From positions 5,270,001 to 5,334,000 of the forward strand of contig NC_047070.1 of assembly GCF_902459465.1 (NCBI RefSeq): a stretch of 64,000 nt of DNA. The letters run 5' to 3'. The position numbers and the translations under genes were made by a program. The notes below the pieces were generated by a model. That model made no database searches, was not told the DNA's origin, and was given only the letters and a program-made list of their open reading frames with translations. Each line of letters opens with the position of its first letter. The stretch's first letter is position 1. This document shows, piece by piece, positions 1,779 through 43,905 of the stretch. The stretch is from Asterias rubens. Its lineage: Eukaryota.

Positions 1779-2548
1779 AGGGAAGTTTGGTTTCTAAATA
1801 AAATCAAAAAAAGGTTTTTGTTTTTTGTTTTTTCAATCACAAATTCTAAAACTTGTCCACCAACATTTTGAACATGTCCAACTTCAACAATCATAACATT
1901 TAAACAAACAACAACTTTGCCGAAATTTCCTGCATACATGCGATACAAGATGGGAATGGCTTATCCGACTTTCAAAAAGGTAAAAAAGAAAAAGAATGTG
2001 CAGTGCACAGTGTGGCTCCCTCAGTGCATAAGGCAATGGCATTGGAAAATGCTTGTTAATAATTTTATTTTGTTAAGTCATCAGTTTAACATGTAAAAAC
2101 TTTCATATAATTCTTATGAAGAAAAGAAAATGTTCATTACTTTAGCATGAAAATGTAAGCACAAATATTGGTCTATTATCTGAGTTAACATGGAAGCAAA
2201 TAGATGTGTCCTTCTCCTACAAATTCATGAAAAACTGTAAGAACTCACCACACGACTGTACTTTCGAGCACCATCTTGGACGATTTTCATGAATAGAGGA
2301 TGCAAGAGACACGAGCGTTGATTGGTACATTTACCCGGTACGGAATCAGAAACTTACAATCAGCCAATCAAATTATACGACACGTAACGAAATGCAGAGC
2401 CATCCTCCCAGCATGCATTTCGAATGAAACGGAAGTAAACAAAGAGCAGACGACAGAGCGCTTTGGCACGTGTAGCGCAACATCGAAAACACAAAACTTT
2501 GTTTTATTTTATTTCAAAAGATCCCGATTTCTCAATGTTACAAATAAA

Positions 2549-11424: not shown

Positions 11425-14400
11425 CTAATAAGGCCTTCCTCTGTGACGACCCCACCCCCGTCTGACCATCTTGGGACTATTGAGCCTGCTGTTCCACTCG
11501 TTGCCGGATCCACCCCACCCTCCAGCTCCTGGGCCTCCACCCGCTGGACCTCCACGACCACGCCCTCTACCCCCTGTGAAGAACAAAAAAGAAGGAAAGC
11601 TTATTAACAAGTTGGCCACAGGAGGTCTGAGAGGTCGTAACGAGGTCAGATAACCCAATGACACCTGCATCTCTAAGGGCGGTCAAATGGACCAAATTTA
11701 AAATTTCCCCTCCAGTAATTTAAACTGTATACTCAGTACTTTCTCGAGTTCCATGAAAAAAAACCTCACAGGCATATTACTAGAGTGAGGTTCGAACCCA
11801 CGACCTTTGTAACGAGTAATGGGGAGAGGTTGATAGTAAAAACATTGTGAGAAACGGCTCCCTCTCAAGTAATGTAGTTTTCGAGAAACAAGTAATTTTC
11901 CATGAATTTGATTTCGAGACCTCAGATTTAGAACTTGAGGTCTTGAAATCAAGCATCAGCAAGCACACAACTTCGTGTGACAAGGGTGTTTTTTCTTTCA
12001 TTATTATCTCGCAACTTCGATGACCGATTGAGCTCAAATTTTCACATGTTTGTTATTTTATGCATATGTTGAGATAAAGCAAGTGAGAACACTGGTCGTT
12101 GACAATTACTAAAGGTGTCCACTGTCTTTAATGTCTTTGAACAAATGTTAGTAAAAATATCAACACAAACAAGATGAAGCAGAAAATTCAGTTCACTGTT
12201 AAGGGGTTAACATACTACATGTACATTGGGCAATTTCATATCTGGACATTTTGACCTCTTTACGTGAATGGAAGTCGGTCAGACCTTGCGGCCGTTTTGG
12301 GCATTGCGGTTGTCACTATGGTCTCTAAAGGGTTAAATCCTTTCAACTTTAGTCTCGCAATTAAAACCAGAATGCACATAATGAGAATGAACTTACGAGG
12401 ACCGTCATATCCAGAACCACCCCAACCATCATGAGGGCCAAAGCCACGCCCACGCCCTCTGAAACCTGTGTAGTAGAAAAACCAGACACAATGAAACATC
12501 AATAAAAATGTTAAAAATCACACCGCCTGAATTTTACAAATTATTTTAATAACCAATACAAAAATATCCTGAAACATTAAACAATAGTTACGCAGATATG
12601 ATAAACCCCCATTTTAACCTTGTTTTTTGTTTGAAAACAGCAACTTGGCAAGATATCTTGTTATAGTTGATAACCAGTAGGAAAAAGGGGACCAGCTAAA
12701 AACTGCACCTTAGTTTTGCGACAAGTGCAAGTGCAAAACTTAATAGTAAACAAATTGGGAGGCTTAATCATTTTGACTCACAACTGAGAAGCTGAATTTT
12801 TGAAGGACGCAGCTATAACATATTTGGAGCAATGTATGGCATGTGAGGTCACCTTTGAACCAATTTTAGTTTTGTATTCTTTCTCTCAGCCAAGATAAGA
12901 CTTTTAGGCAATGGTTGGTGGAAAAAATCAAGTATAAGGTGGAAAGTAAATTATAAAGTTTGCATATATACAATCTATTTGTGAGTAGTGGTGGCTCTTA
13001 GAAAAGCCGGGTTCTCTCATATTACATCAACCAACTTGATTCATTATTCATTCATCATTCATCATACATTTACTTTATTGGTGTCCTCACTTTTCACATT
13101 TCAAAACAAAGTTTGTCAATAAGGTTCAATTAATAGTAATACACAGTAATACACAGTAATACATAGTTAATTAATAGATGAAAAATTGATAACTCACAAT
13201 GACTTAAATTGATCAGTAATACACAAAAGTTATAAATAAGCAGTAAGTAGGACAACAATTAGGTTAAGGTGAAGCCAAGGCTTTTGTGCATTAACCTATT
13301 GACAGACAAACAGCAGAAAATACTATACAGAAAAAACAACATATACAATACGACAGAATAGACAAACAAAACACACAACAAAGGCTAACTTCACAACTCA
13401 CCTGGTCCTCTACTCCATGGCGGGGGAGCTCTGCCCCTTGGAGGCATACCACCCCATCTTCCGGGACCGCCGCCTCTGAAAGGGGGTCTTGGACCCCATG
13501 GTGGGGGAGGCCTGCCACCCCATCGTTGAGGAGGTCCATAATCCCAGTTTGGGGCCCAATCATCTCGTCCATATTGGCCAAAACCACCTCTGTTGGCCCT
13601 TTCTGCAGAAACAAGACGTAGGATACGAATGTTTACTGGTTTGAGTGCTTTGGTTAAAACTAAGACTCCTGAGGTGATCTTCAGAGCGTTCTATTTTCCT
13701 GCAGGGAAGCCGAGGGAAAATAGCTTCTACCTATCTGGAATCACTAAGGCAGTCTTGGTTTTGCGGGTTTGTCAGTGGTTGGGGGTCATGCTCTTATTTT
13801 GGAAGGGGGACTCTGCAGGGGGGGGGCACCATCCTCTTGGTTATGATCCCGTTTGCAATCGTTCACTCGGTTAGATTATACAAACACACATTTTCCTCTT
13901 TTCCCTTTTAGACTTTTGTGAGTACTACCGCGTGGCAGCTTTCTGGTAAATACAAGAAACCAACACTTAACCAATCACAATGCAGAATCTATGCATTCAT
14001 GGCATTGGGTGTTAGAGTATCCTCTTTTTACTTCTGCCTGGCTTCTGTTTAGGTTCTGTTTAGGTTCTGCAGATAATTACCCTCGGCTCTGGCTCGGGTA
14101 ATTAACGCATCCAGACTGCAACCGGTATTAAACAGAGTGTTTAAAACCGGCCAAGCACATATTTATTCCCTTGTTATATACCATTTCTAACCAAAGTTCT
14201 TCTTATGTAAAAACAACATGAAAACACATAAAACTTTACCAATAAACAATATTTAGGAGGAGACCAATATAGCATTACCTCTTTCCTTTCCTCTGTCTAT
14301 GAGACTTTGGAGATTGTCTGCTTTCTTCTTCTTCACCTTGTTCACGATGACTTTGTGGCCCTTAATGACATGGTCACGCAGCACTTCAGACAAGAACAAA

Positions 14401-24300: not shown

Positions 24301-26327
24301 GAATTGGTTTTTGCTTACAAAACAGTTGCTGGCAGTGTAAACACTTTCAAATAAACTAACAAACCTCAGCCTGTAGAAGCTTGAGATCAATAGGCCTAGG
24401 TTCGATCACACATTTGCGTGACATCGATTAAAAAAAAGAAATGTATGAGGGATAAACTCCCATTGGGAATTTACTTTTATTTATTTCTCATCAAACGACA
24501 TTTCAGACAAAACTATGTCAAGGGATGTTTTCTACCATCATCATCATAAGACCGGAAGTTTTATGTAAATCTGTGATCTTAGACAAGATTTGTTCTTACC
24601 AATTCTGTAATGTTCCTATAATTAAGACATCGTGTTTAGAGAAAAGAAAAACAGAATCTGTAACATTTATTTTGTATCACTGATAAAATGTATTTAAAAG
24701 ACAATATCATGTTCACAATCATTTCCAACACAGCACAGTCCTAACACAGTCCAATAATAACAATAACAATAATAAAAAGACAAGTTCAAGCAAAATGTGT
24801 ATACATGTACTCAGGGGTGCAATTTATTATCTCACATTTTTCTAACAGTAAAACAAGTAACAAAGAAAAGCCAGTAACAAATTGATAAGGAACCAGAACA
24901 AAACTAAACATAATTTCTGATCGCAATACTTTGTTCAAAATTGCGTCTGGAACAAAACAACTTTACTAAAAAATGTCGCTCAGATGTTTAAGAAGCACAT
25001 TATGTATAGATGACCATTTCACAAATGACCCCTCAGGTTTTGACCCCAGCAGAGTCTTTATCAAAGGCTAAAGACTCAGCTTGTGGGCCAAAACAAGGGG
25101 CCATTAATGTTGCATTAGTATGCACCTGTGGTGGATTTCACAAAGAGTTAGGGCTAGTCTTATCTCGAGTTACTAGTCCAAACTTAGGACTAGCTGTACA
25201 TTTTTGATATCTCTTAACTCTTTGTGAAATCGACCCCTGATCTAATTAAAATTATCTTTTTAATTTCTTAAAATCTACAAACGTGCAACTTGCAAACTTG
25301 GCAACAAAAGTTCTGTAACAAGTTTTTTTTTTTAATACATGGTTGAACCAGTTACAGCTTGGATCAATATTTTTGGCTACGATAAAAACCTACATCCCTA
25401 AAAACCAAATATCAAAGACACACTTAAAAAACAAAATATCAAAGAAGTATGTTACACTGTTACTACCCCCGTCTTATCAGGCCTTTTATATTAAATTAAA
25501 ACAATCTCAACTCCTTAGGAGTATGCAGCACCGGCAGCCAAGATGGCCGCTGCTTAAGCATTCACATCAGCAATCTCTACTCTCACAATGAGACTCATTA
25601 GCCTTTTTGAGGTATGGCGGACACTATAGGTGTGCACTGTTTGGTTTGGGAGTAAGCAGACAATTTGAATTCATCATATCTCAAAATGGCTTGTTTCTTT
25701 GGAGATCTTGCAGAACCAGGGTAAAAGTTAAATAAATAGCACTGAACAAAATCCTCACTGCTTGTTTTGATTGCAGTTAATAAAATGAGTACGTGTTTGA
25801 ATGTCACGTTTACGCTACGTAATAACTACGTGCAACAACAAAAACTGAAAAACTGTAAAGCTTGTTTTTTTTTCTTCAGTTTGCTTAAACTTATTCAGCG
25901 ATTTTTCATACAGATACTTGTTCTGATATAGTGTACATATCCTAGTAGCTAGATCATGGCGTTTCATATAATGATTTTCCCTATTCATCAGGCACACTGT
26001 ATGCTGCTTTTACACGAGTAGACACTGTGTTCAGCTGAAAAGCTAACAAGTGACTTTTAGGCATTACTTGTAGAAAAACCCAAATCTAAGACACTTAGTT
26101 AGGCCTCTGGACCCCGACACCAGGTCCAATTTCATTTAGCTGCTGAAGCATCAAAAATTGCTTTATCATTTTCTGCTTAGCAAAAATGAGCAGCATACCG
26201 TTAAAAAATTATTTGGCTGGCAACCCTGATCTTGTAAGCAGAATTTTGTTGTGCTTCAAAGTTACTTTTTGTGCTTTTAAAAGCAGCTCTATGAAGTTGG
26301 GCCCAGCATCACATGCAAATATAGGGT

Positions 26328-26547
26328 GCGTTCGTTTAGCTTCCCTGGGTCATCCCCGGTCTGTTCGAAGGGCTCACCCAGGTCAGCCCCCCAGTGCCCT
26401 GCTTGTGGAGTGGGTCACTTGGGGGCTGGCCCCAGGTAAACGACGTCACTACGAGAGCGGTGAGTGGTCGTTCGTTTAGCTCTTGTCAGGGACTCACCCG
26501 AGTGAGCACCGCGGGGGAGACCCAGGGAAGTTAATCGAATGCACCCA
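26328..26547. mobile_element. MITE with GGGTGCGTTCGTTTAGCTTCCCTGGG termini
   Basis: Inverted match CCCAGGGAAGTTAATCGAATGCACCC at 26521-26547; downstream of the gene B stop. Confidence 0.7.
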
Positions 26548-26903
26548 CTGTTGCCAACGGTCTGCCATTTTGGTAGTTAAATTGCAAGTGAAGACAAGGT
26601 TAATGCACATGGCCCCTGAAATCTGCACTCCAAAGTATAGCACATAGGGAAACTGAATCTAAAAATGGCATAACTGACAATGTGGTAATGATGTCTGGGT
26701 CAACCCCCCCCCCCCCCCCAACCCAATGACATTTGAGGTCTGGGCCCAATTTCATAGAGCTGCTTCAGCAGAGAATTGTGATTAAAATGCTTCTGCTAAG
26801 CACAAATAAGCAGGTAAGCATAATTTTGTTGTGCTTAGCTACTTTTTGTGCTTAAGCAGCTCTATGAAATTGTTCCCTGTATATAGCACGGGATGGAATT
26901 TGT

Positions 26904-29900
26904 TTAATACGGTCTGCCTTTACCGCGTCGTTTGTTCCTATTCATGTTGTTCCCCTTGACCCAGTTATCACTGAACCCTCCTCCGCCCATGCCGCCCATG
27001 CTGCCCAGGTTGCCTCCCAGGTTGCCTCCCAGGTTGCCTCCCAGGTTACCACCCATCTGCTGGTCCATTAGGTTCCCGTATCCACCGCCTAGATCCATGG
27101 ACGTGTTCTGTTGTCGCTTGTTTCTGAAGCCTGTAATAGAACAACAACATTTATTTATTTATTTATTTCCAGGCAAACGGTATGTACAGAGAAATAACAG
27201 CACAGAGACCAACAAGCCTGCGAATAAACCAAAAAGCGAAAAAACATCACTATCTTGAAAAGCTAGTGGTTGGAAAGAGAAACTTTGGATCTTTATATTA
27301 ATGGTGGTAAAATAAATTAAGGTACATGTAATGTGCAGTCCCTTCAATTTGAGTGTTAAGATCCGAAACCATTTTCAACACAGGTTTTTGAAAATCATGA
27401 ATTCAAAGGCCCATATATATAACACCTTGTAAGTGGTTACAAGGTGCTACAGCCCATTATACAGCCAGTCAGAAACACCAGTGCAAACCCCTTCTTTCGA
27501 CAATAAGTCTAACTGGGTTCTTTTAAGTGATTTACACATCACACAGGACAGAACAGGGTCCAATTTCATAAAGCCTGTAGGCACGAAATTTGCTTAGCAT
27601 GAAATTTCTTCCTTGGTAAAATCAGGCTTACCAACTAAATTTCCATTTGTTGCATATTGCCCGTTACTGGTATTCAGCTGTTGTTTGCTTATCCTAAAAA
27701 TCACATGGAAATTTGGTTGGTAATCCTGTTTTTATCAAGGAAGAAGTTTCATGCTAAGCACATAGCTTTAGTGCGGTGAGCTTGACCTCTCAGCAACGCA
27801 CACCAAACCAAGATGGGACTAGACCCTACACTATGCTGATCTGAAACACCGTAGCTTTAGTGCGGTGAGCTTGACCGCTCAGCAATGCACACCAAACCAA
27901 GATGGGCCTAGACCCCACACTAAGCTGATCTGAAAACCATAGCTTTAGTCCGGTGAGCTTGACCGCTCAGCAACGCACACCAAACCAAGATGGGACTAGA
28001 CCCCACACAATGCTGATCTGAAACACCGTAGCTTTAGTGCGGTGAGCTTGACCTCTCAGCAACGCACACCAAACCAAGATGGGACTAGACCCCACACTCT
28101 GCTGATCAGAAACACCATAGCTTTAGTGCGGTGAGCTTGACCTCTCAGCAATGCACACCAAACCAAGATGGGACTAGACCCCACACAATGCTGATCAGAA
28201 ACACCATAGCTTTAGTGCGGTGAGCTTGACCGCTCAGCAATGCACACCAAACCAAGATAGGACTAGACCCCACACTCGGCTGATCAGAAACACCACGTTG
28301 GTGTAGTTGTGTCTTGCCTCGCCTTCAACCTCTGGGACCCGATTCGAATCCCACCGGGGGCACTACGTGGATTGGGTTTTCAGTCTCTGCTTGACTGCAT
28401 GGGCATTCTGTTTTTTTTTCCTCCCACATCTAAAACTGAAATTACTTCGTCATCTTCTCTTCTCGTTTGACTCTTATTAGAGCGTCGAGAATATTGATCC
28501 AGATCCAGATCCAGACCAGAGCTTGAGCCTCACCACCTCTACAATCAATCATCCTCCATGTCAAAACTATCCCACATCATTTTTATTCATGCGAGTTCTG
28601 CTCACCTTTCATCTGTCTCTGGTTCATGTTGGTCCCTGAAAATTGTCCTCCTTGCTGCCCGCCCTGCTGTCCGCCCTGCTGCCCGTACAGATTCTCAACA
28701 AACACCCAACCACCACCATCACCTTTACTCACTTGACCTGTAAGTGATTATGTCAAAAGTCACATGTCAAAGGTAGCATGTCAAAAGATCGCATGTATCT
28801 TCTGGAAAAACTTTTGGTCTTGAAGAAAGATTTGATTTCTGATTCGTTTCGGCCCCAACATCCAAAACATTTGATGACATCATTCTGAGAAAAATTGGTC
28901 TGTACATTTTTGTGGGGGAATGTTTTGATTCTCAGAGGACTATTTTAATGTGATAACTTTGAAGTTATATGACTCTTGCATAAAGTCTCTTTGACTGCAC
29001 AAGTGTATTGCTCCTTATGCTTTTTTTAGGAGCATGTAAATCATCTGTATAGTTTTATTTCTATTTTTTTTTCAGCAGATGTACAAGATTCTTACCCCAA
29101 ATCTACCTCTAGAAACATTCCATTTGGTTTTCTGGAGCATGGAAATCATTTGTGTATTTAGTTCTACCTGATTTTTTTTTTTAAGCAGATGTACTAAATG
29201 CTTACCCCGATTTTGGAGCCTACCTCTAGGAACACCACCTGCACATAAAATCATATGTAAACAGGATTCTTAAAGGCACTGGACACCTTTGGTAAATGTC
29301 AAAGACCAGTACTCTCATTTGGTATATCCCACAGGGATGCCAGTGACTCTTCCCTTCAGAGCCTGAAAAATTGTTTGAAGAAAAAGGGGTCACCGCCCCC
29401 CCCCACCCCAGACCCCAAAAACTAGAAAAAACAAAACAGCACTTTTTTAATAAAACATAAAGAAGAAAAACAATTCTCCGGCCAAATGAAATACGGAGCG
29501 CCGGAAATCTTTTTCAAAACTTATATTTTTTTCGGCCAGATGAAACACAGAGCGCTGGAAAAAATCGGGGAAAATTTTAAAAAGCCGGAATTCCGGCAAT
29601 AGCCGGAAAACTGGCATCCCTGATCCCAACATATGCATAAAATAACAAATAATGTGAACATTTTGCCTCAACTGGTCGCCAAAGGTGGGAGAGAATTATT
29701 TAAAAAAAAAACAACTCTGGCGCACAAGTTGCTCAACCCACCCAACATTTCACTGCCCCCTAATCATTAGTATACAGTCATTATCACCATACCTTTGACT
29801 GCACCTATACAATCATTATCACCATACCTTTGACTGGTCCGTAGGAGGATGCACTGCTTCCATAATAATCATCCATCAAGGAAGTCTGGCCCTGGGATAT

Positions 29901-32900
29901 AAAATCTCCCGACATCATACCGCCACCGAATCCTCCGCCACCTTGTAAAGACAAAGAAACGTCATCATTAGCACAACAGAAAGACTCGAGTGGTTCATTC
30001 TGCTAGTCCGACTACTTCGAAGTCAGAGCAAAAACTACAAAACTGCAGAAACTTGTTACATTCAACAGCTTTTTATACTAGCACAACATATTTTTACAAC
30101 AAAATACAGAACATATTAATTGATCATAACATTTACAATAAATCCATTAAAGGATTCGGGTACTTTTTCAAAATGTCCACAGATTTACATTCAACTAACA
30201 GGGTTTGAAGATAATGATAGTGGAAAGCTTCCCTTCAAATATTACTAACTAAGGTTGTGTTGTTTTTGTGAAATGAGTAAAACAAGTCACGAGACCAAAA
30301 TTATTTTAGCATGTAAAATCCCCTCAACCAGTTATGATATTATACCAAAACCATAGCATAACTGGTTAATACGTTTTTACACGCTAAAACTGAGACAAAA
30401 ATTATTACTTTTACTCATTTTTCAAAAACTACAGCACCTCAGTAAGTAAAATTTCAAGGGAAGCTTTCTTCTATCATAATCTTCAAACTGTGTAGGTTTA
30501 ATGTAAATCTGTGGACATTGCGTTTTTTGTTAGTACAAGTACATTTTCGCTTTAAATAACAAGGTAGCGGCTTAGCGTGTAGCATGGCAAACAACTTGAC
30601 ACACTCCAACAATAAGGGCGAAAGTGTCAACTGTGCAGGTGCACAACGTGAACACAATGATCTTTACAATACATTGCGCACTTGTATCAGCAGTATCACA
30701 TAGGCCTAGCAGTGAAGCGCACTGCCAACTACTGATAATCTATACCTGATAAATCTATAATTAATTCCTTTAGATCTAAGTGTAGTTTCACAACAAAATC
30801 ATAAATTGTGAACTCACCCTGTCTTGCTGGTCCGTTATAATACCCGTCATCATAATGCTGAGCTTGGTTTCTTGCTGGCATCTTGCCAAATCCTCCTGGT
30901 GAGAAATTTAAAAAAAAGTGAAACAATTTTTTGGTTTACTCTGGTTGGGGAACAAACTTACTCTTAAAAAAAATGTATCAAAGTTCGCCCTAAACATGGC
31001 TTAAGCCACTCTTGGTAAGCAGTTACAAGAAGAAAAACTACTAAATTTAAAAAATAACTCAGGGAGCTGAAGTTAGGAATTGATATTCCTCTTCAAACAT
31101 TCTAGATTCTAGGGAGTTCCAAAAAGATGCAGAAGGTCGAATGGCTCCTCTTCATAAAAAATGAACATTCCATACACTATTGATTTGTTGAGATGTAGAA
31201 CAATAAGCCATTCAACAGCTTTATTCCACGTACTGCATCTCTTTGGACTCCTTGCCTGGCGCATGTTTCCCTCCATCCTACAATCCAGACTGTCTTGAGA
31301 TGAATGTTAATTCCTACCTTCAGCTCCCCTGAGTTCTTTTCACATCAAATAACGTTTATTTTTTTAGCTCCATACTAAGAACGGCGTTTAGCCTTGTTTG
31401 AGGCGAACTTGCATAAATAAATTTAAAAACATTAAAAATCCTAATTGTTTTTGTGGTAAGAACGATGCCAACTCACCTTGCCTCCTGTCATTAGCGCGTC
31501 CTCGTCCCGCCCCTTTTCCTTTAGCGTTCTTTGCGGGCCCTGGTGAAGTATGGATGTCCTTTAGTCGTTTGGGATTGGCAGTTTGTGCACCTGATTTAAA
31601 ATAAAAGTGTTTTGGGGTTTACAATTCAAGTGAAATGGAGCGGGCGATTTCTCTGGATTTCTTTCTCAACCCCTTTGAGTTTTCGAATGTTCTTAAAAAA
31701 AGTATGGGGAGAAAGAAATAGTATAGATTGTGTCGGTATTTTTTTCATATCTGGTGGTTCACAGATTCAGCTAACCTCATGAATTGTAACATTTGAGATA
31801 TTCTGCGCCTAGAGTAAGGGGAAACACTAGCCCACAAGCTAATTTCAGGAACTTTAAACTTCTGAAAATCATCCTTACTGAATGGCTCACAATTGACCCT
31901 AGCAGTTACTGCTCAAAGATTGAATGAAAAGTAGACATATATATGCATTGTGCCAAATGATTGAACACTACTGTCTCATTTGTTGTTTGCAATGTGCTAT
32001 TTTTGGGGACATTGGGAGGCAGCAGACTTGGGAAACATGTTTGTTTTCTTGTTTTTTAACCACTAAATGCACTAAGTTACATAAGCAAGCCTCCCCACCA
32101 CTAAAAAATAGTAAAAATAATATGTTGCCTCTTGTCTCCTTAATTGGGTGACAAGTGAATTCAAATAACAAAATGGCATCAATTATTAAAGACTCTTGTA
32201 GATCGCTTCAACTTGATATGAAATATAAAGTGATAAGTACAGCTTGTATCAGGCCTGTGAGCGGGTCATGAAAAAAAAGCGGAAAATTGTTGTCCGGATT
32301 TTGGGCCAGCACTACGAACGTAATAATAAATAATAATAATAATAATAATAATAAGACTTGTAATGCGCACATATCCACCCTGCTGGGTGTTCAAGGCGCA
32401 GTAAAACCAAAAACAAAACAAAAACAAAACAAAAACAAAACATAACACAAAGAAAAACAGACACAAAAAAATTAGTCATTGAAAACCTGTGACATAAGAT
32501 AAGTTTTGAGAAGAGACTTGAATTTTGCAGTACAGAGACAAGATCGAAGATTAAGTGGTAGAGAGTTCCATATGCGTGGCGCGGCTGAAGAAAAAGACCT
32601 GTCACCCCATGAGTGTCGAGACTTGGGTTCAATGAGGAGAAGCATAGAACTTGATCGAAGACTCTTTGATGGAGTGTAAACTTGAAGCAGTTCAGAAATA
32701 TAGTGGGGAGCCTTGCCATTAAGAGCTTTGTGGACAATGAGCATCAGCTTGAAGATGATTCGGCTTTAATTAAAAACTGAAGCGTAGACAACACATTCAC
32801 AGAAACATAGGCCACAATTCTTACATGTAACAATGTGTTGTACATCATCATTTTCAAGACATTTTTGTAGCATTCTTTTAGGAATAAATCCACAAGCGCG

Positions 32901-35900
32901 ATAAGTCCTCGTCGTCAACTGTCATATATTTTACTTGTCGCAAAAAAACACACACCGTACATACACAAAACGTGCGTCGTGTGGGGGAAAAACCATGTGT
33001 GCCTAATCTTGTCTCAAGGCATTGGCTTTTTAGTAAAGCGCCCTCTATTGGTGCAATGGAACAATGACATTGAAGTACATGTAAAATAGACATCGCGCTA
33101 AACAAAAAATTAACAGCAACGGCTCCAATGAAATACCAACACGGAGCATTTACTGGGTCTAGCCCCCGACTCACATGTCAAAATCAAATCGCAATTAAAG
33201 TGCTTCCCGATTCCAGGTACGTGCTGCTTGACGATCTATTATGGATGTTAAAAAAGAAGAAGATAAAAACGGAAACGAGAAAAAAGCGGAGCCCGCAAGA
33301 AAAACAAGGAACGGAAAAAAGCGGAACCCAATAAAAATGCGGACGCGGAAAATTAAAAAGAGCGGAAATCCGCTTTAAAGCGGAGATTTCACAGGCCTGT
33401 TGTATAGTGCATATTATTACCTTTTGATTTGTTGGCATTTTTACTCGCATTGTTGGCCTTATTTTTTGCCTTCTCCAGTTTCAGCGTCTTTAAGCTCGCC
33501 TTCTCCACAGTCAGCCAATACTTCTGGATGCAGTGGTCATGTACTTCTGTAAAAGTTAGTCACGTTCAAAAAAGAAAACAAGAACAAAATAAGTGATAAG
33601 AAACAAATAAAAAAATGTTGGAATATTTAATCTAGACGGTCTTGTTAATGAACAAGATCATAAAAACTGTCTCGGCCTTCAGGGCAAGCATCAATGCAAG
33701 CGAAAAAGGCTCCACTATCTTAAGGTATGTTCAAATTATGTCATTTCCACCTTTTTTGGTAACCCCTGGAGTTATAGTTTTCGAGGAGCTTCTGGGAACA
33801 GTATCCTTAGCAATAGAGATGTAGATCAAAGACATTTTGTTTTTTCAGACAAAAGTGGCACAGCTTCTGACGGGTAACGCAAAGATATTGACAAAATAAG
33901 GATACTGCCAACATAAGGCTTAGATAGCTCAATTGGTTATTAACTCGGAGGTCACAGGTTCAAGTAGATCTACATGTATAAATTTTTTCTTTCGAATCTG
34001 CAGAAAACAACAGCCTTCCTATATAATTTTAATACAGGTAATCTTAATTCCGAAGTCAGAGAAATGTGGAGTGGCTTCCGACAGGTACCCTCGCACAATG
34101 AACTTGACAAAGTAGAGAGTCCGCCAACATTTAGGGCTACATGACTCCCTTTGTTTAGCATCAATACTTTAATCGAGAGGTTCAAGTCCCACTCCAGCAA
34201 ATTTTTGTTTGTTTTACCCCCAAAAAACCAATCTATTAAGCTCCGCCTCTTTGCATATTGACCAATCACAACCCATTGCGCCATCAAAATTCTGACAAAA
34301 TAAAGTCCGACATGCGTGCGCGTGCGTGTATGCTTGGCACGCACGGCAGAGTTGTGCAGAATGGCATTGGAGAGGCTCACATGTTTTTGCTCACATGTAT
34401 GCCGTGGGCAGAGCCCAATGAATTGCTCTATTGTCAAGAAAAGAATTTCTCCTTGCTGTAATACTCACGTGCAAGTTTGTCAGCATCTTCAGCTCTTTCC
34501 AAAGCGACGATAGCGGTGCCCTCACTCTTCTCCATAGTGAGAAACCTAAACTTAGCGTGACTCTTGAAATACGCCATCAGATCGTCCTGGGTGAGAGGCG
34601 TGTCCTTGAGACCCGAGACGGTTACCAGTTTGTCTGATGCACTCTCAGCATCTGGCTGGCCCTAAAGAGAATAAAAAAGGTGACCACTATAAGCATAGCA
34701 TTGTTTGAAACTATTAATAAGGGATACAACTGTGTGTGGTGAAGAGGTTTTCAACTAGTATTTAAAACTCGTCGAGGCCTGGTTCTTAATAATTTTATTG
34801 AGACAAAAGCGAGGTAAATTATCAAGAACCAGGCCTCGGCGGGTTTAAACCACTAGTTGAAAACCGATTCAACACACTTTGATTCTCATTTATAAATACC
34901 TTTTTGGTCAAACAACATCAACACTTTTTAGTCAAAAAGTAAAACTAATGCATAAATTATAATTGTTCAATGATTTCTTCAACACAACACCCCTCCAGCT
35001 ATGAAATGGTAAAGCCCTCGGGTAAACAACTCCTTATTTAAAAGGAGATTGCTGTGGGCGGTCGGAATGAAGAAACTGTCTTTTAAGCACAGGTGCAAGC
35101 TCGCGTTTCATGCCCAAGTTTCAACACTTTTTACTGGTGCTATATCATCCGTTCAAACACCCCCACGTGCTGCCCTCTCAGAATGGATAAACTGTCTTAG
35201 GAGTTGATGAATAAATGTTCATAAATACCTCAGACAGTTTCGCTATTCCTATTGGTGGGGAGCGCGTCACGTGGGGGTGTTTAAACGGTTGACAATGACC
35301 AGCTGGAGCTGTTTATAACCGGTTGTTTTCGGATACGTTTGTGCTGGCTAGCCCACAACCTTGTTCACATGGGCGATCGATCTTGCCGCGCCATTTAAGC
35401 CCATGAATACGAAGATGCATACTACACGCCGAATGCATATCCGAAAACTGTCTCACTCATAAAAAATGCAACACACGTACAGAGCTCAAGGCAGTTCAGT
35501 CGTCGCGACACTTTCATTCCCTTAGTACACTTGCAAGTACAACCATGTGTAAATCTTTTTTGTGGGAGTGTTGGCTCTGAGAAGTGTAAAGAGCCAGTGT
35601 GGGCTTCACGTTTTGATTAGTATGCTCCTCTTCGGGAGAATGCTGGACTACTGGCGGTGGTGGAGCTTAAGTATTGCTTGAGGGATATCGTTTGGGCCTG
35701 AAGGGTCCAAGTTTCAAATGTAGGAAGATTCTACAATGATAAAACAGAACACTCATAGACAACCCTCAAACTAAATTGTCTTTAAAATTTGGAAATGATT
35801 ACGACCTTTTTGTTTGAAGGCACTAGAAACGTTTGGTTATTTTCAAATACCATTATTTTCACTTGGTGTATTCTGACATATGCATAAGATAACTAATCTG

Positions 35901-38900
35901 TGAAATCTGGACTCAGAAAAAAACCTTCAATGCACCATGTGTGCTTACGGATGCCTGAAAAGGCGTCAGGCCTGAAGTCTTTTATTACTTGAGTGAGAAA
36001 TAAACCTCTTTCTCAAAAACTATTTTACTTTAGAGCGAGCTATTTCTCACAATGTTTATACTATCAACAGCTCTCCGTTGCTCATTACCAAGTACGTTTT
36101 TATGCTAGCAACTATTTTGAGTAAATACCAAAAGTGTCCAGTATCTTTTAACCTCTGGCAAACACAAATAAAGGAAAAATTGCTGTCTCTCCGCCGATGC
36201 AGAACACTTTTACTACTCACCGGCCTCTGCAGCGTGCGGTTGAACACCAGCAGTTTGTCGTGAATCTTATGCGGTTCTGGATGTTTTAAGATTGCACCCG
36301 CCTCGGCGACATTCGTCATGCCAATGAAGCCATATCCTCTTGACTTGCACTCCCCACCCTCTGTCTCTGGAGGGTCTCGGACGACGACGCACTCCTTCAC
36401 TGTCCCAAATGTGGTGAAGTATTCCAACACGTCGGCCTCAGTGGTCTTTTCCCTGTCCAGCCCTCCGAACCATAACTTACGAAGCCTTTCATGATTCTGT
36501 GGAAGAAAACAACAAACATTGATCAATTTATATAAAACATTTCTGAATTAGATTTCTCGTAAAACTTCCTAGGTTGTATCCCAAATCGGGTGTGATCCCT
36601 GGCCATTAGGCAGGTAAAGTTTCGTGGCCTCTGCCTGGAGTCCCGCGAAAATAGGGAGACCAGCAACATCAGGCCTAGACCAGCAACATCAGGGAAAATG
36701 CCATCGTGTGCAGCCTGTATGTGACTGGTACCTGGTACATTTTTCTGAGCAAATGAGTCATTTTCAGACGCGAGTTCGTCCTTGGCTCAAATCAAGGATT
36801 TGCTCTTCTTACAACCTGTGAGTACTAACAGAAAAACAAGACATTTAGTCAGTTCTCATTGGTTGGCCGTAACTGTTATAAGGGCTCAAATTCATGTCTC
36901 TGCTTCTCACTGCGGTAAGCTGCACTTTCATTTGTTTAAATTTCAAATGAAAACATAGATTATTATAAACACTGAGCTAACCAGTTGAGCCATTTGGAGT
37001 GCAGTTTGACTGCTGATCAGGTGTTTTAACTAGCATCTATCCAGCAGGCCACTGTTAAAGGCAGTGGACACTATTGGTAATTGTCAAAGTCCAGTCTTCT
37101 CACTTGGTGTATCTCAACATGTACATAAAATAACAAACCTGTGAAAATTTTAGCTCTATTGGTCGTTGGAGTTGCGAGATAACTATGAAAGAAAAAAACA
37201 CCCTTGTCACACGAAGTTGTGTACTTTCAGATGCTTGATTTCGAGACCTCAAATTCTAAACTTGAGGTCTCGAAATCAAATTCGTAGAAAATTACTTCTT
37301 TCTCGAAAACTACATCACTTCAGCGGGAGCCGTTTCTCACAAGGTTTTATACTATCAACCTCTCCCTATTACTAGTTACCAATTAAGGTTTTATGCTAAT
37401 AATTATTTTGAGTAATTACCAATAGTGTCCACTGCCTTTAAAGCGAGAGCGGTTTAAACGCCCAAAACTCTCAGACACATCAACGCGTTGCCAGATAAAC
37501 GATCAAGGCAATGTGGAGTTGATACATGTAGGTACAGCCTTTGCAGAGAGGAGATGTGTGTTTCGCTATCCCAGGTAAATTGTTCATTGTGTCCGTGTTG
37601 ACAACAAAATTTACAAGCTTTGGACTGCCATTCGTGTACATTCAATGCACAGCTACAAAATGGCGTCAGCTGTCTCATAAAAGGTGGCGGTACGTGTAGA
37701 CGTTCACTTGAGTCATCTGCACTAGACAATGCAGATGTAGCTTGGGAATCAGCCCCACACAGCATGTCACTTAACACAGTGATAACTTTATTAACTTAGT
37801 ATTATACACTTTTGCAAGCCGAGTAGGCTTCACTCAAAAGTGCCTTCCTATACTATCATCTATGTTCATCAGGCTCTTGGCATTCCTGAAACCAATTCAA
37901 CTCCTTACGAGTATGCAGCACCGGCAGCCAAATGGGTGCACAGGCTGATAGTCACCGGCATCAACAATCTTTTGCTTGTACCCATTGTACTCCTGGGTGA
38001 TGAGGAAACAATTATGGCCAAGTGTCTTGTTCAAGGACACGAGCGCCATAACTGGGAATCATACCCACTCTCTGGTGACTCGGGCACCAGAACTTGAGTT
38101 CCATGCATTACACCGCTACGCCAGCAACAGGCCACTGAGATTAAAATGACTTTAGAGCAGCAAGTCAAAGTTTACGCCAAAAAGAAGGCACATTGGTAAA
38201 CAGGTCAGCAATGACCCAACTCTCCACATGAGGGGTGGAATGTCTTTACAGAGAGTCCGTCACAGCTGGATTATGACCAGGGTTCTTAGAAACAACCATG
38301 GCCGGGAGTGTCGCACCTTGATCAAAAGGAACAATTGATTCTGTGTAACTAGAATTCCGCTTACTTCTCACACTAAGGCTGTACACCAATCTGAGCTGCA
38401 GCAAGTCATAGCTTATGCCAAAAGGAAGGCACATCGGTAAACAGGTCAGCAATGACCGAAACCTCCACATGAGAGATTGGGGTGTCTTTTTATAGCAGGA
38501 TTATGACCAGGGTTCTTAGACACAACCATGGTCGGCAAGAGTCGCACCGTGATCAAAAAGGAACACTTGATTCTGTGCAACTAGAATTCTTGTTACTGCA
38601 GCAAGTCATAGCTTATGCCAAAAGGAAGGCACATCGGTAAACAGGTCAGCAATGACCGAAACCTCCACATGAGAGATTGGGGTGTCTTTTTATAGCAGGA
38701 TTATGACCAGGGTTCTTAGACACAACCATGGTCGGCAAGAGTCGCACCGTGATCAAAAAGGAACACTTGATTCTGTGCAACTAGAATTCTTGTTACTTCA
38801 GCAAGTCGAAGTTTACACCAAAAGGAAGGCACATCGGTTAACAGGTCAGCAAAGACCGAAACCTCCACATGAGAGATTGGAGTGTCTTTTTATAGCAGGA

Positions 38901-40221
38901 TTATGACCAGGGTTCTTAGACACAACCATGGTCGGCAAGAGTCGCACCGTGATCAAAAAGGAACACTTGATTCTGTGCAACTAGAATTCTTGTTACTTCA
39001 GCAAGTCGAAGTTTACACCAAAAGGAAGGCACATCGGTTAACAGGTCAGCAAAGACTGAAACCTCCACACGTTCTTAGATACAACCATGGTTGGCAAGAG
39101 TCGCACCATGATCAAAAGGAACACTTGATTCTGTGCAACTAGAATTCTGGTTACTTCTCACAGAAAGCATGCCTAGATTTTCATCTTTGAACATATCGAA
39201 AGGGCAAGGCTGCTTTCATGTTGTAAAGGGCACTTCAATTGGAAAATCTTAAAGTCAATGGGAATCTTTTGAAGGGCACAAATGCCTAGACTAGGGGCTT
39301 CCGTGGACTGCGTGTAATTCCAGGCCTAAGAAAGGCTCAACACCAATGTGAGTTGCAGCAAGTCAGAGATTACGCCAAAAGGAAGGCACATCTGTAAACA
39401 GGTCAGCTATGACGGAACTCTCCACATGAAAGGAGAGGTGATGAGGCCACGGCTTCTCAAACCTCAGTCGGACAGAAATGAAGCACTGGCTGAATAAATA
39501 TTCAGGTTCGTCCTCTCCAAGTCAAATCAAAAACAAAATGCGGACAAAAAGGTCCATTAAAATACTCTCCCTCCTCGTTCAAGATTTTGTAAAGATATAA
39601 ATGAATCAGAACTAAGCTATTACCGCCTGTGAGAAATTTCGCCGGAGTGGACACCTTAATTCAAAAGTCGATCCTCTGACACTTCATCCAGAGAAAGAGT
39701 GATCTTAAATCTTGGAACCTCTCCTTCATATCCTGGGTGTGTCTCAAAGTCTGTATAAAGTTCATCCAAAGAGTTAGTGAAGAGATAAATAAAATAAAAA
39801 TAAGAGACACAGACAAACAGGTAATTTGGAGTTGTACAGGAGTGAAAAAAGACAAAGAATACAGGAAGAGAACTTTAGGGCCCTTTTCGAACCCATGACT
39901 TTGGCTTCGCATTCGGTTCAGGCTAGCTAGGCCCCTCAGTTGTTTTGACTATACACATGCTATGCAGTCAGGGATTCAGACCAGAGAACGGAGCCTGAAG
40001 CCGAACCCAAAGCCAAAGCCAAAGCCGTGGATTTCGAAAAGGGCCTAGGAGACCAAAATTAGTTTGCCAAATTCATGTTACCTTTCTCTAAAGCTCTTGG
40101 TAACATTTTTCCAGTGAGTTGACAAACCGTTTAAAACCATTCAACTACATGTACGGGTTTTGTATGGTGGCACAGCTGTGCACAGAACAGTGTGCAATGA
40201 ACCAGTATGCATTCAATGACG

Positions 40222-40262
<41 letters not shown>

Positions 40263-43200
40263 CATTTGTATAGTGCTTTCCATAGGCAATTCAAAGCGCT
40301 TTAACGTTGTCTAAAAAGATGTGTTCTTCACTGAGTCTTGAATGAGCTGATCGAGGACGAGTCTAGGATGCCATTGTAGGCTGACATGGTTCATCCTTGA
40401 GAGCTTAAAACCCTTTTACTATCACCACAGTGGTTTATATCGAATGGTCAGACAGTAGGAGGGTTAACTGTGTACCGATAGACTCATTCACCACATGGTA
40501 CCACATTGATCTCCATAACCCCTCAAACTTTTGTCTACCATTCAACAACACAGTGGTTTATATTGAATGGTCAGACAGTAGGAGGGCTAACTGTGTACTG
40601 ATAGATGCACTCACCGCATGATTCCACATTGCAGGCTGATATCTCCATAAACCTTCTAAAATGTGTCTACCATTCAACATTTGGATATTGAATGGTTTGA
40701 CAGTAGGTGGGTTAACTGTGTACCAAGGGATGCATTAACCACATGATACCACACTGCAGGCTGGCATCCATGCACCCTCTAAGAATTGTCTGACATCTCC
40801 ATAAACCTTCTAAAATTGGTCTACCATTCAACGCCACACAGTGAATGATATTGAATGGCCAGACAGTAGGAGGGTTAACTGTGTACTGGTAGATCCATTC
40901 ACTACATGATACTGCAGGCTGGCATAGTATTTATAATACAAAACCACTGACATCACGGTTCAATGGTCACACAGTAGGAGGGTGCACTGTGTACTTATGC
41001 ATTCAGCAAATGACGATCGAGAACGTCAGTGAGGACGCCGCTAAAACAAAATATTCAAACAATTGTAGAACAATGAGAAGTTCGCCATTTACCAGGTCAG
41101 CATCGTGTGTGGATAGGTAGGCATTCACCATGTACCAAATTGAAGGCTGGCATGGTCAATCTATCCTTAACGGTGTGTCATGGCTGAGCGATTAAGAGCA
41201 CCGGACTCAAGCTCTGGTGTTTCTGTTCAGCAGAGTGCAGATTCAAGTCCCGGTCGCATCCTTCAGCAAGACACTTAAAACCATTATTGCTGCGTCCTTC
41301 GGATTGGACATAAAGCCGTTGGTCCTGTGTGTTGTGTAATAAAGCATGCAAAAGAACCCAGTGCACTTATTGTAAAGAGAATGGGTTTCGCTCCGGTGTT
41401 CCTGGTTTGATTGGCTGCATATTGCGTCACAGCACCTTGTAATAAATTACATGGTGCTATGGTCTCAATACATAACTCCACAATACCTTGCAGGAATATA
41501 CTGGATGTGGACGCAACATAACTGAGTGACGGATATGAGCACTACAAATGTATACTAGAATTACTTCAAGTATTCTGACGGTTGAGCCAAAAACAAATGA
41601 GGAAACCCAAGCAGTAAGTGGTTATTGGGTTGAAAATTTGAGAATTCAAAAACAAAAAAATGAAAATCAACAAAAATTTACTTTTCCTTCTGCCACAGCT
41701 CTCTTAACCTCGACGCTCTTCTCGTCGATAGTTTGGTGGCCGTCGACGCTCCCGGCCAGGGCAGCTTTCATTTCTTCCTCCGTTGCCATGGTAATGAAGC
41801 CGGAGCCGCGCGACACCGTCACGCCGTCCACCTGCTCCATGCTGATGGTGCACTGCACGATGTTGCCGTACTGGCTGAAGTGGCCGATTAGAGTTTCCTT
41901 CGTGGTCTTTTCTTTGTCTAGGTTGTTGAGGCTGATCCTAAATTTTCTCTCTGGGGACTGGTGATAAAAATGTTTAGTAAAATTAAAGGAAAACCAGTGG
42001 CAATTAAACAAGCAAAATGTAACTAATATTAAGTTTTGTACCTACATATACCCATAAACATTTTCTCAAGCTCTTTTAAAAAAGAATTCAGGCATATCAC
42101 TCCGGTGTGATCCCAAGTTGTAACTACTTAAAGGGAAGGTACACGTTTGGTAATTACTCAAAACAAATATTAACTTAGAAACTGACTTGGTAACGAGCAT
42201 TGGAGAGCTGTTGATAGTATTAACAGTGTTGGAAACGACTTATTTTATGCTATAAATGATTGGATACACCAAGTGACAACACTGGTCTTTGACGATTACC
42301 AAACATGTGCAGTGCTTTTAAATGTAATGTTGTATTATTATTTGAATTTTGCCTTTACTTTTACAAGAACTTGCCTTGTATTAACAGGTATCATACAGGA
42401 TTGGTATTATTTAAAAAAACATAATTGTTTGGTACAGGCTAGAATTTCATCTCAGAGAACTCAGACAACAGAGGCCTTGGCCTTTGTGCCCTTTTAAAGT
42501 CTCCCATAAACCTTACGGCTTAAGATTTTCCATCAGAAATGCCCTTTTCAAGTTGAAGATGGCCTTGCCCTTTCACAGATGAAATTTTTCGGCCACACCA
42601 CAGAGGGCTTGGCATTTGTTGCCCTGGCCTTTGTGCCCCTTAAAAACACCAATAAAACCCTGGGTTTGTGCTCTTACATCTCGTGGTTTGGAGACCATCA
42701 CTGCCACAACCTTGTCATTTATTACATGGGTTTCAACTAGCACAGCATCCGTCTCGGCCTGCGTAGACATCGTGACAAATCCATAGCCCCTGGATCTGCC
42801 CTTGCCGTCCCCACCATATCTCTGCTTTGTTCTGGCAACTTGGCACTCTGCCAGCTTGCCGTACTTCTCAAAATGCTGCTGTAGGTCGGTGTCTCTCGTC
42901 TTGTAGTGAAGACCTCCAATGAAAAGACGTGGGCCGGTCTCAATCTTAGTTTCTTCCTTGTTGTCTCCCTGCAAGGAATACATAAGTTTATTAAAGCTAC
43001 ATTTCGTGAACTCCGTAGCGCGTACGCGTAAAAAGCACCCAAGCTTAATTCACATAAAATAGCTGTTGATTTGTATTCGCACTCCACACACTCCGCCCAC
43101 AGCTCAGCCAGCCGATGATGTCATGCTGATTGGCATATTCCAAGATGGCTACGCCATGTACAAATCGAGGAAATTAGAGTGTTCGGAGAAAGGTAGCAAA

Positions 43201-43905
43201 GTTATTGTGAAAAATTTCTTTTGAAAATTTTATTTGTTTGACTATTCAAAACTTCAAAACACACAAAAAGCAAGCTAAGGGTAAGACTAAGAGCTAGGTG
43301 AACACATTCTGCCAGTTTAAACTGCCAAGTGGCTCGTAGGGGAGGCGCCAGAATTTGACATTTGGTTATTTCTTATAAGTTATAGCTGCATAAGGAAATG
43401 GTATAGACATGTGGCTAAGGATTCATCCAGCCTTGGCCACACAAGTGGGGCTAGGAGGTAGGATGCAGTTAATGAATTTTTGAATTAATAATAATATATG
43501 TAAAAAATTCTTACAAATATTTAAAATAATTGTCCACAGCTAGTCACCGGTCCAGGCTATTGAGCAAGCTAGCACGCAGTCCAGTAAATGAGTGAATCGA
43601 TTATCGATTATAGATTACATTCATCATGCCTTTCAGTTCACTGTGACTGATTCACATTTATAAATTATTCACATTTATAAATTAATCATACACACGTTTT
43701 CTTCTTGCTCTGCTTGCATTTGGTCCCCTTGGCCTTCCTCCGTCTCGCCGGTGTACTCCATTCCGCCGTCGGCGTCATCTTGACGGTTTTCAGATTCTTG
43801 ATTTTCTCCTTCCACTCCCGACTCATCCTCCTCAAGTAATCGGGCCACGGTTTCGTCATCGAGATCTACTTCTGTGATCATGCTCTCTGATGCCTCGTCT
43901 GACAT
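26904..43905 (-). CDS. Multi-RRM hnRNP-like RNA-binding protein, paralog B (11 coding exons, 678 aa, 4 RRMs, G/Q/N-rich tail, C-terminal PY-NLS)
   Basis: Exons (minus) 43905-43696, 42968-42678, 41957-41682, 36496-36221, 34661-34469, 33546-33421, 31590-31477, 30895-30818, 29941-29828, 28737-28606, 27130-26904; GT-AG and phase-consistent, total 2037 nt. RNP pairs LFIGGL/RGYGFVTM, ISLNNL/RGSGFITM, LWFGGL/RGYGFIGM, VTVSGL/EGTAIVAL; ends KRRGKGRPY*. Confidence 0.88.
27763..28295 (-). repeat. Tandem array of six ~89-bp tRNA-like SINE-head units in the last intron of gene B
   Basis: Unit starts at 27763, 27852, 27940, 28029, 28118, 28207. The minus-strand unit TTGCTGAGCGGTCAAGCTCACCGCACTAAAGCTATGGTGTTTCTGATCAGCAGAGTGTGGGGTCTAGTCCC aligns to the SINE head at 41177 and 53930-54000. 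Confidence 0.85.
28296..28445 (+). mobile_element. tRNA-derived SINE fragment with V-domain-like sequence
   Basis: A-box-like TGGTGTAGTTG, B-box-like GATTCGAATCCC, then CTGCATGGG...TTTCCTCCCACATCTAAAA, resembling the V-SINE central domain (from memory). Confidence 0.5.
29332..29621. mobile_element. CAGG-ended (hAT-like) MITE with 6-bp TSD ATCCCA, nested in a Kolobok-like MITE
   Basis: ATCCCA|CAGGGATGCCAG ... CTGGCATCCCTG|ATCCCA; the flanks rejoin to the Kolobok consensus GGTATATCCCAACATATGCATAAAATAAC; GCCGGAAA subterminal repeats. Confidence 0.8.
32250..33399. mobile_element. 1.15-kb CAGG-ended (hAT-like) element with 6-bp TSD TTGTAT, carrying a nested L2 fragment
   Basis: TTGTAT|CAGGCCTGTGA ... 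TCACAGGCCTG|TTGTAT; clustered GCGGAA subterminal motifs at 33285-33385 and 32278. Confidence 0.75.
32320..32760 (-). mobile_element. L2/CR1-clade LINE 3' fragment (end of ORF2, 3' UTR, (ATT)n tail)
   Basis: ORF 32472-32744 LIVHKALNGKAPHYISELL..Y.PS.SLRS..GDRSFSSAAPRIWNSLP..FKSLLKTYL is the typical L2 ORF2 C-terminus. Similar ends at about 52965-53300 (-) and 55270-55460 (+). Confidence 0.85.
34715..34895. repeat. Long imperfect palindrome in intron 4 of gene B
   Basis: GGTTTTCAACTAGT..TTAAAACTCGTCGAGGCCTGGTTCTT.ATAATTT / AAATTATCAAGAACCAGGCCTCGGCGGGTTTAAACCACTAGTTGAAAACC around a loop TATTGAGACAAAAGCGAGGT. Confidence 0.85.
38155..39430. repeat. Tandem repeat of ~200-bp units (about 6 copies) in intron 3 of gene B
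   Basis: GCAGCAAGTC...CCAAAAGGAAGGCACATCGGT.AACAGGTCAGCAA recurs at about 38157, 38397, 38598, 38798, 38998, 39356; the central copies are nearly identical. Confidence 0.9.
40420..41000. repeat. Diverged ~120-140-bp tandem repeat (GAATGGTCAGACAGTAGGAGGGTTAACTGTGTAC core, about 5 units)
   Basis: Core recurs at about 40441, 40565, 40688, 40852, 40961; an inverted related array lies at about 63290-63600. Confidence 0.75.
41170..41545 (+). mobile_element. tRNA-derived SINE with CORE-like central motif
   Basis: A box TGGCTGAGCGATT, B-box-like GATTCAAGTCCC, then CAGCAAGACACTTAA and CGTCCTTCGGAT.GGAC.TAAAGCCG. Copies at about 20030-20340 (-), 37990-38120 (-), 46480-46885 (+), 49850-49990 (-), 53575-54000 (-), 62560-62740 (-). 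Confidence 0.8.

Follow-up and report, generated by a model that had tools for sequence, protein, structure and literature searches.

Two adjacent genes in the genome of the sea star Asterias rubens encode proteins with four and five RNA recognition motifs (RRMs), and the question raised by the locus is whether such arrays constitute a family of their own or derive from a known RNA-binding protein. The genes lie in a stretch of 64,000 nucleotides, hereafter called the window (NCBI RefSeq assembly GCF_902459465.1, contig NC_047070.1, positions 5,270,001 to 5,334,000 of the forward strand), which is eukaryotic, has about 40% G+C and includes no N runs. All coordinates are window positions unless another sequence is named. 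Gene B (43905-26904) is followed downstream, on the same minus strand and at a distance of 3.3 kb, by gene A (23585-11425), in a head-to-tail tandem. The studied span, 11425-43905, goes from the start ATG of B (43905) to the stop of A (11425). The reading that we favour, with a probability of about 0.8, is that both genes are expressed, arose by tandem duplication in the sea-star lineage, and go back to a gene of the heterogeneous nuclear ribonucleoprotein (hnRNP) A type in which the RRM1 exon was multiplied.

Exon models of both genes were built by linking open frames across GT-AG borders in such a way that the phase continued. The gene A model includes 10 exons and codes for 655 amino acids (aa), the gene B model at least 10 exons and 640 aa; all borders are GT-AG. 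Both proteins feature an acidic N-terminus, a row of RRMs (five in A, four in B) and a tail rich in glycine, and their last residues before the stop are GRPY. Exon 1 ends AAC/GT in both genes, and the last RRM is interrupted in both by a phase-1 intron. The exons can be aligned in pairs, with identities of 36% (exon 2 of each gene), 48% (exon 3 of each gene), 43% (A exon 5 and B exon 4) and 33% (last RRM); for A exon 4, which encodes RRM3, the pairwise comparison found no partner among the B exons. Pfam RRM_1 scored above the gathering threshold on every RRM exon, except for the partial piece encoded by B exon 5 (18.4 bits vs 20.7). The original prediction, made from the letters alone, had described a tandem same-strand pair with matching exon logic, AAC/GT junctions and GRPY ends, and both the exon models and the pairwise identities agree with it. 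The proteins had also been called unnamed, and indeed NCBI labels them 'uncharacterized protein'.

Identity of the RRMs and positions of the introns

Single domains were compared with solved structures. The best relatives of B RRM1 in the PDB are the first RRMs of hnRNP A2/B1 and A1 (E 1e-22). A profile of A and B RRM2 is matched best by RRM1 of hnRNP A1/A2 (E 2e-15), and B RRM3 by RRM1 of hnRNP A1 (E 1e-15), a resemblance already noticed in the original prediction. The best matches of A RRM5 are residues 108-177 of hnRNP A2/B1 and residues 116-186 of hnRNP A1, which correspond to the second RRM of these proteins. Chains of hnRNP D, hnRNP A/B and hnRNP DL scored weaker than hnRNP A1/A2 in the searches for every domain. 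No nucleolin chain was among the matches listed for B RRM1, the RRM2 profile, B RRM3 and A RRM5, in line with the earlier remark that the layout is that of nucleolin and the RRMs are not. Searches of the ESM Atlas, with a single exon and with the complete protein of gene A as queries, returned only generic RRM clusters, with scores up to 0.88.

Maximum likelihood trees were made from single RRMs aligned over 80 columns, with the RRMs of PABP as outgroup in both trees. The four sea-star last RRMs form one clade (support 100/99), nested within the clade of canonical hnRNP A RRM2 domains (100/99). On matches and trees, the last RRM of both genes is thus assigned to hnRNP A RRM2, and is not a further copy of RRM1. 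Among the upstream domains, sea-star RRM2 copies make one clade (100/100), A RRM3, A RRM4 and B RRM3 another (98/89), and sea-star RRM1 copies a clade with weaker support. A tree joining all sea-star RRM1-type copies into one clade was not rejected (approximately unbiased test, p 0.38). As a separate observation, RRM2 of A (19744-20013) and RRM2 of B (41682-41957) group with each other (98/80, then 92/79), and not with their orthologues in the sea star Acanthaster planci; this could reflect gene conversion between the RRM2 exons or a long-branch effect.

Exon borders of canonical hnRNP A genes were obtained by mapping Anolis hnRNP A1 onto its gene, and by reading the Artemia and Helobdella borders from tblastn alignments. 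In the three canonical genes an intron is located after helix 2 of RRM2 (DKIV/IQKYH, DKII/LEGNH, DKVV/LIKHH); its phase is 1 in Anolis, the one canonical gene mapped exactly. At this position of RRM2 both sea-star genes are likewise interrupted by a phase-1 intron, EKFA/MLRDH in A and DKLA/QVHDH in B. Anolis hnRNP A1 and the sea-star genes also share a phase-0 intron a few residues ahead of RRM1, a phase-0 intron separating RRM1 and RRM2, and a glycine-rich tail wholly made of phase-1 cassettes. Each upstream sea-star RRM, A RRM3 included, resides on its own symmetric phase-0 exon, 258-291 nt long, and copying such exons in tandem keeps the reading frame. In contrast, canonical genes have an intron within RRM1, and each sea-star RRM1-type domain is encoded by one uninterrupted exon.

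Because the last RRM is an RRM2 and intron positions and phases are shared, the two genes are best described as derived hnRNP A members in which only RRM1 has been multiplied. The proposal that the array arose by multiplication of an hnRNP A1-type RRM is sustained by domain matches, trees and the presence of one copy per symmetric phase-0 exon. The accompanying picture of a lineage-specific family is to be refined, in that the pair belongs, as a derived member, to the named hnRNP A group and does not stand apart from it.

Canonical hnRNP A1/A2B1/A3 proteins, including the Artemia 'hnRNP A1, A2/B1 homolog' and Helobdella HELRODRAFT_180844, share with the sea-star pair RRM1-type and RRM2-type domains, the phase-1 RRM2 intron, the phase-0 introns flanking RRM1, the phase-1 Gly-rich tail cassettes, and a C-terminus that is basic and disordered and carries a PY motif. 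They have one RRM1-type domain, whereas sea-star B has three and A four. The 2xRBD-Gly layout of the hnRNP A group, with exactly two RRMs, is therefore not that of either protein. The sea-star proteins differ also because of the acidic N-terminus of 57-70 aa, the position of PY as the final dipeptide, the presence of several degenerate RNP motifs, and a far faster divergence. The proteins hnRNP D, hnRNP A/B and hnRNP DL are two-RRM relatives with a PY-type import signal at the extreme C-terminus; they resemble the pair in the C-terminal PY, and differ in having two RRMs only.

N-termini carry 19-28 D+E against 0-5 K+R, and tails are 28-31% Gly. A tails are G/R-rich in both Asterias and Acanthaster (24-34 RG/GR dipeptides); the one in the window has in addition 17% Pro and 7% Trp. 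The B tail in the window is G/Q/N/S/M/Y-rich and contains 2 RG/GR dipeptides, the Acanthaster B tail 23, and thus tail chemistry varies among species. All four proteins (A, B and both from Acanthaster) have a basic stretch and terminate with R-x(2-5)-PY, an end that fits the rules of transportin signals. As read from the models, RNP motifs are canonical in RRM1 of both genes and in B RRM3. The RNP2 aromatic residue is missing in RRM2, and in the last RRM of both A and B; the last RRM of B is also devoid of the RNP1 aromatics. AlphaFold, run on a three-sequence alignment, predicted five beta-alpha-beta-beta-alpha-beta domains (predicted local distance difference test, pLDDT, 70-88), a basic helix at residues 500-521, and disorder at residues 1-62 and 522-652, with pLDDT <50 from residue 522 onwards.

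Transcripts and gene features

Public RNA data support part of the gene A model. Exons 2-3-4-5-6 are joined at the modelled borders in contigs from four runs carrying two organism labels, and the check on RNA junctions proposed at the outset gave for these exons the order described. In three runs, one contig of 1.8-2.1 kb each spans 21175-20903, 20013-19744, 18077-17820, 17574-17308 and 15672-15468. In the fourth run (X5) the same exons are covered by two contigs, 1.3 kb and 0.9 kb long; a joint from 15669 to 17305 was also listed. The segments skipped by A contigs end CT..AC, that is GT..AG on the minus strand. RNA runs contain about one fifth of the sequence words in 15400-21200, in line with the exon fraction. 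The possibility that the similar RRM exons of A are alternatives, which exclude one another in a transcript, was considered and rejected, as all four are found in series in every transcript contig.

For gene B, a stretch that is 0.44 exon was surveyed, and RNA runs contain 0.39 and 0.36 of its words. The B junctions are credited because of their GT-AG borders, an exon pattern identical to that of the annotated Acanthaster gene, and these word fractions. A strict scan for a missing B cassette gave nothing; a looser scan of the B tail introns left 31590-31477 as sole good candidate. B probably carries this segment as an 11th exon, which would raise the protein to 678 aa. This is close to the 682 aa annotated in Asterias amurensis, and Acanthaster B has 11 exons. 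Features of both genes are reported in Table 1.

Table 1. Features of genes B and A in the window, listed in the order of transcription.
Feature	Position	Strand	Properties
Gene B	43905-26904	minus	Acidic N-terminus, 4 RRMs, G/Q/N/M/Y-rich tail, end KRRGKGRPY
B exon 1	43905-43696	minus	ATG; acidic, 27 D+E and 2 K+R in 70 aa
B exon 2, RRM1	42968-42678	minus	291 nt, phase 0-0; Pfam RRM_1 43.5 bits
B exon 3, RRM2	41957-41682	minus	276 nt, phase 0-0; Pfam 32.6 bits; RNP2 without aromatic residue
B exon 4, RRM3	36496-36221	minus	276 nt, phase 0-0; nearest to hnRNP A1 RRM1
B exons 5 and 6, last RRM	34661-34469 and 33546-33421	minus	hnRNP A RRM2 type, split by phase-1 intron
B candidate extra cassette	31590-31477	minus	Looser scan of B tail introns
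B tail cassettes	30895-30818, 29941-29828, 28737-28606	minus	Phase 1-1
B last exon	27130-26904	minus	
Gene A	23585-11425	minus	Acidic N-terminus, 5 RRMs, R/G/P/W-rich tail, end RHRGRPY
A exon 1	23585-23415	minus	ATG one codon past in-frame stop; acidic, 19 D+E and 0 K+R in 57 aa
A exon 2, RRM1	21175-20903	minus	273 nt, phase 0-0; Pfam, RNA contigs
A exon 3, RRM2	20013-19744	minus	270 nt, phase 0-0; Pfam, RNA contigs
A exon 4, RRM3	18077-17820	minus	258 nt, phase 0-0; divergent extra copy; Pfam 27.7 bits
A exon 5, RRM4	17574-17308	minus	267 nt, phase 0-0; paired with B RRM3
A exons 6 and 7, RRM5	15672-15468 and 14383-14279	minus	hnRNP A RRM2 type, split by phase-1 intron, then basic helix
A tail cassettes	13602-13402, 12465-12397	minus	Phase 1-1
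A last exon	11573-11425	minus	Stop included

Additional observations concern the introns and the RNA runs. Of the words of the B stretch 41682-42968, 0.09-0.17 occur in metatranscriptome runs from marine plankton and other marine samples (X13, X14, X15), as would be seen if planktonic larvae of sea stars expressed the gene. In the intronic stretches 16950-17340, 19470-19860 and 20056-20830 of gene A, contig word depth reaches from thousands to 157,000, against about 20-100 on exons; these deep contigs probably stem from interspersed repeats, of which numerous copies elsewhere in the genome are transcribed. Introns also host four tandem arrays, located at 16315-16686 (24 nt x 15.5), 18593-19292 (39 nt x 18), 27761-28295 (89 nt x 6) and 38396-39069 (200 nt x 3.4). 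The first two are open in several frames, and give rise to long spurious open reading frames (ORFs).

Occurrence in sea stars and similar arrays elsewhere

A profile was made from the RRM2 exons of A and B, and an exhaustive HMMER search with it gave as top hit XP_022086675.1 of Acanthaster planci, a 1272 aa 'uncharacterized protein'. In this protein, residues 1-590 resemble B and finish with WPY, and residues 605-1272 resemble A and finish with GRPY. In Acanthaster DNA (DF978520.1, L002:5001-20625) the B frame reaches PY and is closed by a stop codon at about 11475; the A frame opens at 13006, past an in-frame stop. Since the B ORF has its own stop, and the A ORF its own start after an in-frame stop, the RefSeq model is, by its reading frames, a wrong fusion of two genes. 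Mapped separately, the two halves show the same exon pattern and phases as the Asterias models, including the 276-nt RRM exons and the 193-nt exon which precedes the phase-1 intron.

A search with the Acanthaster A half identified an 'uncharacterized protein' of 652 aa in Asterias amurensis (P0151). Gene A exons are 83-99% identical to it (96-99% for exons 1-5), and the last 40 residues are the same. In A. amurensis a separate gene, coding for 682 aa, is located upstream of the P0151 gene, and a convergent RCC1-like gene downstream. A convergent RCC1-like gene resides downstream of the pair in three genomes, those of the window, A. amurensis and Acanthaster, and the gene neighbourhood is thus conserved. 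In the window it is an RCC1/RLD-repeat gene on the plus strand at 2300-7130 (matched at about 4.3-7.1 kb), convergent with gene A. A Tudor-domain gene is found upstream of the pair in Acanthaster, and had no match in the window at 44-64 kb.

Both Acanthaster and Asterias have 4+5 domains with one-to-one partners, and thus both exon copying and gene duplication predate the split of the two lineages. RRM1 is 47-55% identical between the two sea-star orders, vs 71% for the RRM1 of lizard and brine shrimp; by this measure the sea-star genes diverge fast.

In four protein database searches all orthologues were from sea stars, and the pair is lineage-specific, as had been supposed, within the reach of protein databases. 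Word-based searches for proteins, in which the queries were either half of the Acanthaster model or a profile of three sequences, returned the A. amurensis gene A protein as sole orthologue; the 682-aa A. amurensis B protein was absent from these returns. The RRM2 profile found in the HMMER search only two clear relatives, the Acanthaster model and a 107-aa ORF from a TARA metagenome, which corresponds to a single-exon A-type RRM2 and probably comes from another sea star. A literature search found no published description of these sea-star proteins.

The other high scorers were poly-RRM proteins of the nematode Ditylenchus, of a dinoflagellate and of crustaceans. They are unrelated, and their scores sum over many domains. 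RNA recognition motif domain-containing proteins of Ditylenchus destructor (as KAI1714115.1, 2606 aa, 21 matched stretches) are long hnRNP A/DAZAP1-like RRM arrays which score high against the sea-star RRM2 profile, and differ from the pair because they have 8-21 domains and neither the acidic N-terminus nor the PY end. This nematode has many very long poly-RRM proteins (P0002-P0008); the genes for several of them share a single 375-kb contig, suggesting that such arrays have expanded locally on a large scale. Another parallel is P0020, a 585 aa protein encoded by an intronless ORF (GCA_046766295.1, contig JBJNWA010052988.1, 2.4 kb, L006:451-2208). It shows the same kind of expansion of an hnRNP A protein, with three domains of the RRM1 type, one of the RRM2 type and a Gly-rich tail, and it differs in having neither acidic N-terminus nor introns. 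In the tree the RRM1 copies of P0020 fall together, in the company of canonical RRM1 and apart from the sea-star copies, so that the expansion is independent.

Origin, alternative readings and meaning

The ancestor of the pair would have been an hnRNP A-type gene with RRM1, RRM2, a glycine-rich tail and a PY motif. Ancestral RRM1 may have resided on one exon between phase-0 introns, and tandem copying of this exon would have yielded three domains of RRM1 type, with the original RRM2 kept behind them. Next, the entire gene would have been duplicated in tandem, giving B and A, and one further RRM1-type exon may have been gained in A or lost from B. Some results weigh against this scheme. A RRM3 gives weak and unspecific PDB matches, none specific for hnRNP A. 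The order among the RRM1-type copies and canonical RRM1 is not resolved on 80 columns; a single origin of the copies from RRM1 is compatible with the data, and not proven. Pfam HnRNPA1_LC was not detected in the sea-star tails. In gene B, the junctions and the putative 11th exon are model predictions. Finally, RNA binding, nuclear import and self-association of the proteins are all inferred.

A and B might alternatively be the sea-star co-orthologues of hnRNP A1/A2B1/A3, engaged in ordinary hnRNP A jobs in animals devoid of a two-RRM gene. Intron positions, RRM2 identity, glycine-rich tail and PY motif, being common to canonical hnRNP A genes, agree with such a view, and no echinoderm two-RRM hnRNP A was among the listed best hits. 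The searches, however, list best hits only and are vertebrate-biased, so that this absence says little on whether sea stars keep a two-RRM gene, a point which bears on our reading as well. The fast divergence of RRM1 fits paralogues freed from the ancestral role, and we regard co-orthology as possible, though doubtful. The number of genes may also be questioned. The Acanthaster model joins both halves, and in the window the two genes are on the same strand at a short distance, as would be expected if one gene encoded a single nine-RRM protein, like the 1272 aa one. Yet in both genomes the B frame is closed by PY and a stop codon, and the ATG that opens the A frame directly follows an in-frame stop; an acidic N-terminus and a PY end are present in each half, and A. 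amurensis is annotated with two genes, of 682 and 652 aa. A single gene is very unlikely, and read-through B-A transcripts may occur as a minor form.

The combination of acidic N-terminus, four RRMs and RG-rich tail recalls nucleolin, and the likeness to hnRNP A might be fortuitous if the pair were akin to nucleolin or to some other known protein with many RRMs (nucleolin, PABP, RBM12/19/28). Against this, four of the five domain types have hnRNP A1/A2 as best solved relatives, with no nucleolin among the listed matches, PABP RRMs are placed as outgroup in both trees, and introns match those of hnRNP A genes. The sea-star RRMs are not nucleolin-like, the acidic region is short (57-70 aa) and lacks the alternating basic repeats of nucleolin, and both terminal PY and hnRNP A-type gene structure set the pair apart. 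A chance resemblance is hardly credible. Descent from an hnRNP A-type gene by multiplication of the RRM1 exon, followed by tandem gene duplication, accounts for the locus best.

By analogy with known hnRNP A/B proteins, the RRMs which keep the RNP aromatic residues (RRM1 of both proteins and B RRM3) would bind single-stranded RNA in a multivalent manner, while RRM2 and the last RRM, in which key aromatics are lost, may act in protein contacts. Transportin would recognise the basic R-x(2-5)-PY end and carry the proteins into the nucleus. Self-association may be driven by the disordered tails, and the RG-rich tail of A is a likely substrate of arginine methylation. The acidic N-terminus may fold back onto the basic tail or the RRMs. 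A more speculative idea, which we hold to be improbable, is that the pair makes up a sea-star-specific scaffold of RNA granules, for example in oocytes or planktonic larvae. The RRM1 array would provide multivalency in RNA binding, the two tails, RG-rich and methylatable in A and Q/N/M/Y-rich in B, would by their different chemistry tune separate or mixed condensates, and the acidic N-terminus would work as a brake; read-through might even yield a nine-RRM protein.

The pair is a lineage-specific variant of the known hnRNP A family, and not a new kind of system; it reveals no new mechanism. A practical outcome is the correction of the fused Acanthaster RefSeq model. For the family, the locus provides a natural example of how an RNA-binding protein may gain valency: a whole RRM, carried on a symmetric phase-0 exon, was apparently copied within a conserved hnRNP A gene, and the gene was then duplicated. 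The paralogues retained the domain array and adopted very different low-complexity tails. The pair is thus suited as a natural experiment on the effects that RRM number and tail chemistry may have on the behaviour of hnRNPs.

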